DNA of 64,000 bases from Bugula neritina (lineage: Eukaryota; Animalia; Bryozoa). The notes under the pieces are model-generated. The model did not search any database. It worked only from the letters and a program-made list of their open reading frames with translations, and was not told the DNA's origin. This document shows positions 10,601-13,273 of the stretch, piece after piece (position 1 is the first letter of the stretch; every line of letters starts with the position of its first letter). A program made the translations under genes and the position numbers. Where the stretch lies: assembly GCA_964035545.1 (NCBI GenBank), contig OZ037769.1, forward strand, positions 496,001 to 560,000, read 5' to 3'.

Positions 10601-13273
10601 CAGAAGAAATAGTGACTACAGACACAAGTTATGAAGTGTATGTTGAGGGTGGAGTTGAGTTTACTCTCTCTGTCAGAGCTGTTAATAATATGGGTCTTCA
10701 TTCTGGTTATCTTGTCATCACAAAGACTTCTCCGGAAATCGGTACGGAGTTGAATTGGGAAAATTCAGATCTATATTACTATTTCTAAAATCTTTTCAAG
10801 TTCAAGCATATACATATATAGGCCTACTAGCTTGTTGTGATTTTATATGTTAATGTTTATATGCTTCCTATAATTCCTAGTGCAATGCTATATTTTCAGC
10901 ACCACAGTGGGGCTCAGCTACAGTTGCCATGGAAACACTCAACAGCTCCTGTGTAGAACTAATATGGAGTAGACCTGAGTATCCTGGGGGTGACATCACA
11001 AGCTATCAGGTCTGTAACACTTTCTTTTCGAAACCAATCTATAACTGCAATAGTTTCCTATACTCAGAAGATTTATTAAAACAATTTGTATAAAAAATGG
11101 CTGCTTTAAATCATTATCTTTTGAATAAAAATTAGAGTGTTTAAGATATTAAGACATGTATATATTTAAAATTATGACACTCTAAAAACGAAGCTGAAAA
11201 TCTGTATATGAGTACAGCTGACACTTATATGACTTTCAGTATACGTGTACAAACATGGCCGCCATGGACAAGTTACCCTCAACCTCTACAAGTCATACTG
11301 TATGTGGATATTCAGCTTATACTTTAGTTGAGTGTAACATCAGTGCTGAGAACAAAGCTGGGTTTGGAGAGTCTACAGAGTTTGATTCTGTCTTCACAAG
11401 TTGTGAAGGTTAGTTGTTAAAATTATTCTCAACTCAACATGTCCGGCTCATTGACTTTATTATCTAAATATTTGAAAAATGAAAAATATGAATACCGAAT
11501 GCATTTTTTTAACGCACTATGAATTCGATAGGCCTATAAATGGCTCACCTTTCTTTTGACTTTCATTAAATATGATGCTGAATACACAAATATAAATATG
11601 TAATTTAAGCACTTTAAAACTTCAACTCTGCTGGCACAAGCTGTGAGCACTTATGTGGTAAAATACATGTAGATGAGCATTAAAGTTTCCAATTTCCTTG
11701 TTCAATTTCCTTAAAGTTTTTGTAGCTTACTAAAGTTAATTCTTAAGTCTACGATCACATGTTTGTGCTCACATTAGTAATTTTATAAGAATGAAACTTT
11801 ACTGTCAAAATCAGCAAAATATTGTTGATTACCTTATAAAAACCTAACTTATTGATGATACATGTAGTAGGCCTAATGCATATAGTATAAAGTCGCATCT
11901 CGCTAGCAGTAAACTGTTTAGGTTATAATAATTCATGAATGCATTTTAGGTCCTGTCCTACCAAGCAACATAGCTTCTTTTGTAAAGCAGAAAATATCAA
12001 TAAGCTCCGTCACAATATTTTTAGATATTTCAGACTTAGTAAGTAAGAGTTTCATAATTTTATACTTTATTTATTTAATAGTTATATATTTTTTGTATTA
12101 TTGCATTCACATAATAAAACTTTCAATATTCAACTGACTTTTGTCATATGTAGATCAAAACTAGTTTCACACCACCATTTTCAACAGTTGCAATATTTTA
12201 GCTCATTAGACATGCAATTAGTATCTGTTATTCTGGGTTTATTAAACCTACTCATCACTTGAGTAATTAAATATTTGTATAGCTAGTTGGATAAAAAAGC
12301 TGTTTGAAAGCTTTCAGGCAACATTTCTGAACGATTATGGTTAATGATCTGCATTATTGCTATATAATATACTTTGGGTGAAACAATTAGTGAATTTAAC
12401 ACCATATGGAAGTATATATATAGGCTTTACATTCTTTGTTTTAATTTTGTCACATTTTCAATTGTGCTTCAGTCAAAAGGTTTATTGTCAGTTTTTCTTT
12501 ATATTGTTAGAACGTAGCAGTAAACTGTGATGAGCTGACTCAGTTGGTATACAGAGTGGATACAGAGACTGAGTATACAGATGTTGGTGAATATATAGAA
12601 GGTTTACAACCTGGTACAGAGTATACAGTGGAAATCAGAGCTGAGAATAATGCTGGCTTGAGTACAACTCAGAGCTTTGACATCGTTACTGCAGAGATAA
12701 GTTCAGGTATGATACATAACGATATACATCATTCTCATCTTTACATGTGTAATACCGTATCTACATGTGTATTACAGTATCTACATGTGTGTTACCGTAA
12801 CATTACTAATAAATTATATTTTTCCGACTTTAGAATACAGAACGACTTTACTGTCTGTCGGAATAACATGTGGTCTGGTAATACTAATCCTCACAGCCAT
12901 CATAATCATACTGGTTAGACAACTCCGTATCAGAAAGTACACTGATTCAGCCCAACAGAGCAAGTCTACTGATGAATACGAAGAAGTTGGACCCAACCAT
13001 CTCCACCCTGTGATGTCACTCAATGACTCAGTTGAGCTCCCAGTGGCTGGTGTACCACACCCTCCAGTCCCTTCAGTCTATGAGAGCATAGATAAGAGGG
13101 ATACAGTTGCTGATGGTATTAAGGACTACACAGGACTAGAAGATATTAGCCTCTCTTCCAACTATGAACATCTGAAAGCTAGGCAGAGCGGTAAAAACTA
13201 TGAAAGAATGAATTATGATGATGAACCTAGAGCACAGGCTAATAAAGTTTATGAAAATTGTGACAAAGATTAA
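4649..13273 (+). CDS. Gene B: single-pass non-catalytic receptor (signal peptide, 2 F-type lectin-like domains, 4 FN3, TM, ITAM/ITIM-bearing tail), about 840 aa
   Basis: 14 exons: 4649-4712, 5519-5710, 6451-6702, 7201-7413, 7743-7985, 8209-8318, 9672-9822 (acceptor abnormal), 10237-10325, 10537-10741, 10900-11009, 11240-11408, 11950-12038, 12511-12706, 12834-13273. Signal peptide MYWRVSTLSLLAVLSF. F-lectin/F5-8C hallmarks twice (NLAKGK..AVDG..NQWWRVDLG..EVEVYG). FN3 motif GLQPGTEYTVEIRAEN. TM LLSVGITCGLVILILTAIIIILV. Phases match gene C. Confidence 0.82.
8500..9656. repeat. About 1.1 kb of near-perfect (CA)n microsatellite followed by short (TA)n, in intron 6 of gene B
   Basis: Seen directly. 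It produces the spurious HT/CV-repeat ORFs. Confidence 0.98.

Follow-up and report, generated by a model that had tools for sequence, protein, structure and literature searches.

The window analysed here is a stretch of 64,000 nucleotides of the Bugula neritina genome (assembly GCA_964035545.1, contig OZ037769.1, positions 496,001 to 560,000) and consists of AT-rich eukaryotic DNA. The contigs of this genome are designated C1 to C8 and so on, with C5 being the contig that holds the window; positions without a contig name are those of the window. The gene under study, gene B (C5:501.5-509.3 kb), is predicted to encode a type I surface receptor with two discoidin-like lectin-type domains, FN3 domains, one transmembrane (TM) helix, and a disordered acidic tail. 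A local tblastn search with the gene B exons over C5:446-560 kb mapped four tandem genes on the + strand, all having the same order of ectodomain exons: gene Z (C5:465.9-473.2 kb), gene A (C5:479.6-497.3 kb, its end occupying window 1-1250), gene B, and gene C (C5:511.9-528.0 kb; window 15935-31951). Genes Z and B end in a tyrosine-motif tail, whereas genes A and C each have a TM exon followed by two tyrosine-phosphatase domains, so that the row reads tail, phosphatase, tail, phosphatase. In gene C the TM exon lies at 23840-24073, and the active site of the D1 phosphatase domain (VHC/SAGVGRSG, window ~27750-28400) is intact.

The terminal coding exon of gene B (12834..13273, + strand) was assigned on the basis of its open frame, matching phase, and substitution pattern. 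It is preceded by an acceptor AG at 12832-12833, is read in codons from 12836, and ends with a TAA stop codon at 13271-13273. The FN3 exon before it stops at 12706 in phase 1, with a donor GT at 12707 (GTATGA). A GAA codon is completed across the junction by bases 12834-12835, so that the reading frame continues from one exon into the other. The terminal exon encodes the end of an ectodomain linker, a TM helix, and a cytoplasmic tail of 118 residues. The helix (12848..12916, assigned by hydropathy) consists of 23 hydrophobic residues without a charged one, has a mean Kyte-Doolittle hydropathy of 3.0 in its best 19-residue window, and is followed by the basic sequence RQLRIRK. Since the first 10 residues after the helix have a net charge of +3, a type I topology is predicted; the tail as a whole is acidic (net -7). 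No NPxY motif was found in the 118 residues, and a Pfam search of the tail returned only sub-threshold, TM-driven matches. The TM helix, the tail, and the 3' untranslated region (UTR; 13274..13591, which matches the sister copy at C5:472723-473490 with ~85-90% identity) all lie on this one exon, with candidate poly(A) signals AATATA at 13557 and ATTAAA at 13446 and 13614. Gene B ends at 13273 and, unlike genes A and C, has no phosphatase domain: from 13274 up to the beginning of gene C, no exon of that type was found.

The tail contains eight cytoplasmic tyrosines, at residues 35, 48, 82, 98, 110, 122, 127, and 139 of the terminal exon, by which they are numbered below. All the motifs listed in the initial annotation (DEYEEV, SVYESI, SNYEHL, YTGL-x8-YEHL, YERM, and YENC) were present in the frame of 12834-13273 and, together with KY (Y35, read in frame at 12938-12940) and NYDD, account for the array of eight tyrosines described there. 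Its assignment of the motifs to the Src-family, p85, and Grb2 types of SH2 ligand was also correct at the level of patterns. DEYEEV (12971..12988) fits a Src-family SH2 and substrate-type site and forms the core of an EYEEVG element shared with other tails. SVYESI (13073..13090) fits the pattern [ILVS]xYxx[ILV] of the immunoreceptor tyrosine-based inhibition motif (ITIM). The pair YTGL-x8-YEHL (Y98/Y110; 13127..13174), the second half of which (SNYEHL) is also an ITIM-pattern match, had been called a canonical ITAM (immunoreceptor tyrosine-based activation motif); the core pattern does fit, with the spacer at its upper limit of x8. YERM (13199..13210), a p85-type YxxM site, lies 12 residues past YEHL. 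Near the C-terminus is a further pair, YDDE-x8-YENC (13214..13261; NYDD at 13214-13225 and YENC at 13250-13261), in which YEN is a Grb2-type YxN site. Three of the tyrosine-to-tyrosine gaps are exactly 12 residues.

To estimate chance probabilities, the residues of the tail were shuffled 200,000 times. The ITAM pattern appeared with p=0.010, two or more ITIM patterns with p=0.04, and both together with p=0.0014. Lower values were obtained for three Yxx[LIVM] motifs spaced exactly 12 residues apart (p=0.00017) and for aspartate or glutamate directly after at least six of the eight tyrosines (p=0.0005; six are so followed in gene B). Three N-Y pairs gave p=0.007.

All homology searches were run exon by exon. 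Protein and DNA searches agreed that the exact tail exon is present twice in the Bugula genome, in gene B and in gene Z (C5:472740-473174), the two being 88% identical in amino acid sequence. Four further products (P0002-P0005; 81-84% identity), encoded on Joint Genome Institute (JGI) metagenome contigs with a related gene order, came from a word-based protein search. The introns of these copies are ~9-14% diverged from the Bugula genome, and the copies are therefore ascribed to a related lineage, its divergence being put at roughly 10-20%. Conservation was examined in five full copies, namely B and Z of the Bugula genome and P2, P3, and P4 of the JGI contigs. All five are open and have the same acceptor context, GACTTTAG/AATACAGA. 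All eight tyrosines, whose conservation the initial annotation had proposed as a check, were invariant in the five copies, at shallow depth only. DEYEEV was unchanged save for one E/A change at +2, the Y, E, S, and I of SVYESI were invariant, as were both tyrosines and both +3 leucines of YTGL-x8-YEHL, and YERM did not vary. When the columns from Y to Y+3 were counted as motif and the remaining ones as linker, 3 of 32 motif columns were variable against 32 of 90 elsewhere (Fisher p=0.0056). The ratio of nonsynonymous to synonymous substitution rates (dN/dS) was 0.29-0.46 in all ten copy pairs. Taken together, the regular spacing, the acidic bias after tyrosine, and the conservation exceed chance.

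The intron upstream of the tail exon and the exon itself group differently. In the intron, B is closest to P3 and Z to P2 (86-91% identity versus ~67%). On the other hand, the exon groups by genome: 19 informative columns, including a 9-nt indel, separate B and Z from P2, P3, and P4, versus one column that joins B with P3. Because the exon follows the genome and the intron follows the paralogue, the tail exon appears to have been homogenised between paralogues within each lineage, with the caveat that metagenome contigs of paralogues can be chimeric. In gene B this intron, of 127 nt, is filled in large part by a 20-nt tandem repeat of 2.9 copies (12742-12799); this region aligns at 86% with the diverged copy P3, and gene Z has a 1.1-kb intron instead. 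On the JGI contig with P0002 (L008:1212-2793), no recognisable last FN3 exon was found between the exon corresponding to that at 11255 and the tail exon, so that this contig is either a variant without that FN3 half-domain or a chimeric metagenome contig.

A protein designated P0001 (L017; GCA_018292915.2, JACVVK020000120.1:451044-467206) was the sole weak match of a HMMER search with the tail (E=2.5e-4). It was rejected as an orthologue, being a repeat-tailed SRCR receptor of another animal, from an unrelated assembly, that has only the stretch LHPV-x-SL-x-D in common with gene B, and no close relative of it was found in the Bugula genome. Its tail consists of ~17 tandem 18-residue units (SSDYLHPVTSLSDNQRAL). 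The unit resembles NHLHPVMSLNDS of gene B, in which the tyrosine is replaced by histidine; this likeness may be due to chance or to a short linear motif present in both.

More distant tails of the same type were found elsewhere in the genome. A tail at C5:8568407-8568790 contains SDEYEEVG, which it has in common with gene B, and YESI-x8-YDKV. When this tail was used as a query against the genome, it matched gene B (E=0.039) and lectin-FN3 cousins at C5:1.28 Mb; three more of the matching tails lie at C5:2.22-2.25 Mb, and C1:2.8-3.43 Mb contains at least 14. At least 14 other tails of the genome have the EYEEVG hexamer ~20 residues past the TM helix. Such tails are encoded by a single terminal exon and consist of a TM helix, EYEE(V/P) ~20 residues inside, later YE-type motifs, and often a terminal YEN. 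The tails at C5:8.57 Mb and C5:2.2 Mb also contain YESI or YESM. In otherwise unalignable tails, tyrosine pairs 12 residues apart were found, usually with N before the second tyrosine (YSRL-x8-YDKI and YESI-x8-YDKV), and the tails of the C1 cluster end in YEKV-x8-YENT, a terminal Y-x11-YEN pair as in gene B. A profile built from the family tails without B, Z, and the cousins gave the cytoplasmic part of gene B 13.1 bits, a score reached by 1 of 2000 composition-matched shuffles. Pairwise BLASTP of the gene B tail against the family tails was not significant, and direct homology to the C5:1.28 Mb cousin tails was rejected (BLASTP E=20; likeness at the motif level only). By its profile score and the common layout, the tail of gene B is a distant member of a genome-wide family of EYEEVG TM-tail exons. 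Only B, Z, and their close copies have the YTGL/YEHL/YERM run.

The initial annotation had suggested a search for the same exon on other ectodomains. The exact exon was found only twice, both times on the same ectodomain. However, the distant EYEEVG relatives are attached to at least three other types of ectodomain, namely PAN-PAN-unknown-FN3-Sushi (C1), FN3 with Sushi (C5:2.22 Mb), and an FN3-rich type (C5:8.56 Mb). The C1 cluster (C1:2.81-3.43 Mb; L035, L038-L050, and upstream L052) contains at least 14 genes of the PAN-PAN-unknown-FN3-Sushi type, and their TM-plus-tail exons carry PEYEEVGL, AEYET, and VYEKV-x8-CYENT.

The genome was also searched for enzymes that could phosphorylate or read such a tail, and 46 SH2 matches were obtained. 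The exons at C7:14.371-14.378 Mb (L007) encode an SH2 domain, ankyrin repeats, a second SH2 domain, and a tyrosine kinase, which is the architecture of Shark (PMC9546547). Both SH2 domains retain the FLVR-type arginine. In a comparison of the kinase exon with solved structures, SYK (E=1e-22) and ZAP-70 scored ~14-20 bits above the other single-stretch matches, the top-listed two-stretch EGFR entry having been set aside. A Src-family kinase with an N-terminal MGNC, an SH3 domain of the ALYDYEARTDEDLSFKKG type, and a kinase domain is encoded at C4:8.17 Mb, and a second one at C2:11.3 Mb. Two other candidates for this family, at C4:21.87 Mb and C8:11.39 Mb, were rejected and read as Csk-like and Abl-like, respectively. 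At C3:23.740-23.748 Mb, two SH2 domains are followed by Y_phosphatase exons, a locus labelled SHP-type by co-location alone. Exons for tyrosine-phosphatase domains form large tandem clusters at C1:3.96-4.23, C6:8.02-8.43, C3:7.6-8.14, C5:1.31-1.51, and C5:2.14-2.31 Mb; receptor-type phosphatases are therefore strongly expanded in this genome.

In addition, dozens of small contigs contain full-length kinase or phosphatase domains that are broken only by TAA or TAG and almost never by TGA (for example C10:262-966, C33:18549-19265, C176:33222-33977, and C201:57526-58122). This suggests an organism with a ciliate-type code, in which TAA and TAG are sense codons, co-assembled with the bryozoan as an epibiont or contaminant.

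The tail of gene B is most likely a multi-phosphotyrosine docking platform. This part of the initial annotation is favoured by the conservation of the motifs, the acidic bias after tyrosine, and the enzymes encoded in the genome; for gene B we infer transcription, phosphorylation, an SH2 partner, and on/off pairing from sequence. More specifically, we propose that the tail is phosphorylated by a Src-family kinase, that Y98/Y110 recruits the Shark-type kinase, and that the phosphatase-type paralogues form the opposing arm, a mechanism that we regard as plausible without going so far as to call it probable. Clustering by a ligand would lead to phosphorylation of the tail tyrosines by a Src-family kinase, for which the membrane-proximal DEYEEV would be a good substrate and Src-SH2 site at once. 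The doubly phosphorylated YTGL-x8-YEHL, with its tyrosines 12 residues apart, could then engage the tandem SH2 domains of the Shark-type Syk-family kinase, and YERM and YENC might serve as p85-type and Grb2-type sites, respectively. Genes A and C, which place nearly the same ectodomain on two tyrosine-phosphatase domains, would supply the dephosphorylating arm. As for the features of the ITAM class, gene B has the motif itself, a predicted cytoplasmic position, conservation of the tyrosines and +3 residues, and a Syk-family kinase in the same genome. For the ITIM class, there are two pattern matches (SVYESI and SNYEHL; shuffle p=0.04) and a candidate SHP-type locus, labelled by co-location alone.

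Several observations weigh against this mechanism. An ITAM match at the 1% level is expected many times over across a whole genome; what stands out at that scale is the ordered, periodic arrangement with acidic residues after tyrosine. The x8 spacer is at the upper end of the ITAM range; the definition applied here permits x6-9 (PMC9546547). Motifs of the Yxx-hydrophobic type also serve as endocytic signals. Conservation was seen only at shallow depth (synonymous divergence dS 0.12-0.25), and eight invariant tyrosines by themselves have P=0.06, given 35 variable columns out of 122. The EYEEVG family is mostly without a strict ITAM, and the conserved core may therefore be EYEEVG with the Y-x11-Y pair rather than the ITAM. 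The HMMER search, made in 1.84 billion representative proteins, found no orthologue of the tail; this blank says little, because the same library also lacked the close JGI copies. Finally, no transcript support for gene B was found: the only public run with the stretch (X1) was considered as RNA support and rejected, because its contigs pass through introns, which identifies it as DNA, and most of its variant contigs match Z at positions that distinguish Z from B.

Alternatively, the tail may be a phosphotyrosine scaffold of the adhesion or growth type for Src-family, Grb2-type, and PI3K-type partners, with the ITAM incidental to a 12-residue Y-E-x-hydrophobic period and no Syk or Shark kinase involved. 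Three consecutive N-Y-E units suggest internal repetition, the element common to the whole tail family is EYEEVG with the terminal YEN and not the ITAM, and the ITAM pattern alone has p=0.01. However, three tail types that cannot otherwise be aligned have 12-residue tyrosine pairs with L, I, or V at +3, and this spacing suits a tandem-SH2 reader, of which the genome encodes one in the Shark-type kinase. We consider such a scaffold unlikely, though it deserves attention. It is somewhat less likely that the motifs are sorting signals for the clathrin adaptor AP-2 in an endocytic or phagocytic lectin receptor, which would need no phosphorylation. YTGL, YEHL, YERM, and YESI all fit Yxx-hydrophobic, and the ectodomain is lectin-like, as in many endocytic receptors. 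On the other hand, six of eight tyrosines are followed by an acidic residue (p=0.0005), and YEEV, YxN, and a strict spacing of 12 residues belong to SH2 ligands and kinase substrates, whereas AP-2 signals do not need them. A single sorting signal would be enough, yet eight tyrosines are conserved. Both roles can coexist.

The initial annotation had described the platform as activating or switchable. An inhibitory or switchable tail could recruit a tandem-SH2 phosphatase of the SHP type, either through SVYESI and SNYEHL as ITIMs or through a bidentate Y-x11-Y site. The two ITIM-pattern sites and the gene with tandem SH2 and Y_phosphatase domains at C3:23.740-23.748 Mb are consistent with this, but two or more such patterns are reached at a shuffle P of 0.04, the SHP assignment comes from co-location alone, and a second inhibitory form would be redundant beside paralogues that carry built-in phosphatases on the same ectodomain; we regard this as improbable. 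Slightly more improbable still is that the motifs have no function, either because the gene is a silent or decaying duplicate or because they arose by chance in a disordered tail rich in tyrosine and acidic residues and look alike since the copies are young. No RNA support was found in the one run with the stretch, divergence can be assessed only at shallow depth, and homogenisation of the exon between paralogues would by itself keep the copies alike. Against this, dN/dS is 0.29-0.46 in all ten pairs, substitutions avoid the motif positions (p=0.0056), the five copies are open with an identical acceptor, and the EYEEVG element is common to distant tails.

The proposed docking tail can be compared with known receptor systems. 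Vertebrate paired receptors (KIR, Ly49, and SIRP) have near-identical ectodomains with opposite outputs and lie in tandem clusters with sequence exchange. A charged TM residue and a borrowed ITAM adaptor are usual in their activating members, and the inhibitory members use ITIMs. The ITAM core YxxL-x6-8-YxxL is found in FcR-gamma, and Fc-gamma-RIIA and the hemITAM lectin receptors bear the motif in their own tails. The Bugula row likewise shares an ectodomain across putatively opposed forms and has the same ITAM core. In contrast to the vertebrate receptors, gene B has an uncharged TM helix and its own motif, the opposing paralogues carry phosphatase domains, and there is no sequence homology.

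Drosophila Draper acts through a Src42A-ITAM-Shark relay that is opposed by bulky transmembrane phosphatases, which are excluded from the receptor clusters (PMC13578246). Gene B, which is known from sequence alone, resembles this member of the CED-1/MEGF10 family as a predicted invertebrate type I receptor with an ITAM pattern in its own tail, a putative Src-family writer, a putative Shark-type reader, and putatively opposing transmembrane phosphatases. However, Draper has an EMI/EGF-repeat ectodomain and an NPxY tail, whereas gene B has two F5/8-type-C domains with FN3 and no NPxY, and no sequence similarity was found between the two tails. For the Alr receptors of the Hydractinia allorecognition complex, an in silico logic has been drawn from ITAM and ITIM tail patterns together with Syk/Shark and SHP homologues in the genome (PMC9546547). 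These are clustered, fast-diverging type I receptors of a colonial marine invertebrate, some with ITAM- or ITIM-pattern tails, and the evidence is likewise in silico (PMC9546547). They differ in having Ig-like ectodomains in place of the lectin-type and FN3 domains of Bugula, and an ITIM tail where the opposing form in Bugula is a built-in tandem phosphatase. Within Bugula, the EYEEVG tails share with gene B the single TM-plus-tail exon, EYEE(V/P) ~20 residues in, the 12-residue pairs, and the terminal YEN or YxN, but are without the YTGL/YEHL/YERM run and stand on PAN-PAN-x-FN3-Sushi or FN3/Sushi ectodomains. The kind of system is thus already known from Draper and Hydractinia Alr, and gene B is a variant of it.

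Bryozoans are colonial and fuse with or reject their neighbours, and Bugula hosts a vertically transmitted symbiont. To our knowledge, neither a recognition receptor nor a pathway of immune signalling has been described in bryozoans, and a full-text literature search for bryozoan and ITAM returned nothing relevant. The locus offers a testable candidate in five parts: an ITAM-pattern lectin receptor, a phosphatase sister gene, a Shark-type kinase, Src-family kinases with Csk, and an SHP-type phosphatase. Should the tail signal, the ITAM/Src/Syk logic would reach a further animal phylum, and an ITAM tail would be paired with a receptor phosphatase, unlike the ITAM/ITIM pairing of vertebrates. 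If it does not, the tail is one more disordered tyrosine-rich tail. A broader and more doubtful possibility is a modular immunoreceptor-like system, in which a reusable, homogenised exon for the TM helix and the EYEEVG and paired-tyrosine tail is placed on several unrelated recognition ectodomains and here alternates with built-in tandem phosphatases on one and the same lectin-FN3 ectodomain, the resulting on/off pairs being read by Src, Shark, and SHP for recognition of self and non-self or of symbionts and microbes. Such a system would be an independent invention of the paired-receptor logic outside vertebrates.

The ectodomain of gene B is encoded on the + strand by exons within 5500..11413, which were identified by Pfam and are colinear with those of Z, A, and C. 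The two F5/8-type-C (discoidin-like) lectin-type domains are encoded at 5500-5727, 6564-6710, 7218-7433, and 7685-8005, a further exon colinear with those of the other genes lies at 9672-9833, and FN3 exons lie at 10594-10788, 10929-11030, and 11255-11413. The last FN3 half-domain exon (12544..12706, + strand; Pfam fn3/FN3_DSCAM; donor CAG/GTATGAT at 12707) has four local paralogues at 79-94% identity. Pfam detected F5/8-type-C and fn3 only in this ectodomain, and no EMI or EGF repeats. A candidate first exon (4649..4712, + strand) contains an ATG, a hydrophobic stretch resembling a signal peptide, and a donor CAG/GTAG in phase 1; it overlaps the 3' end of 4138-4689, the sole upstream block retained by all four genes. 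Within a gene B intron lies an (AC)n microsatellite of ~556 units (8501-9613), and a similar CA-rich tract is found at 57411-58287. Among the four genes, the identity of the ectodomain exons ranges over 58-98% in a mosaic fashion, with the greatest variability in the first half of lectin domain 2.

The upstream flanks of genes Z and B are homologous over 3 kb (82.5% identity), whereas B and A/C share only the 550-nt block at 4138-4689 in this region. Downstream, Z-B homology picks up again past a gap of 3.7 kb in Z. Because the homology spans both flanks, a tail gene and a phosphatase gene were duplicated as a unit (Z-A and B-C). Homology of B to A/C covers the last FN3 exon and its donor and ends 8 nt into the intron. 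This 5' break is the only real swap point relative to the phosphatase-type genes. The suggestion in the initial annotation that the tail was gained as a single TM-plus-tail exon is supported structurally by the one exon and the adjacent break, which would fit gain and loss alike. A discrete cassette of exon and 3' UTR ending at the poly(A) site was rejected, since Z-B homology resumes ~3.7 kb on and also covers the 3 kb upstream. The ~3.7 kb segment after the gene Z 3' UTR (C5:473490-477231) is absent after that of gene B, with homology resuming at C5:477231, and is probably an insertion.

Downstream of gene C, window 36459-38127 and 39022-40852 contain a Sushi gene with a TM-plus-tail exon that ends in PPPSY, followed by two tandem paralogous open reading frames of 188 amino acids, each of which contains several hydrophobic helices.

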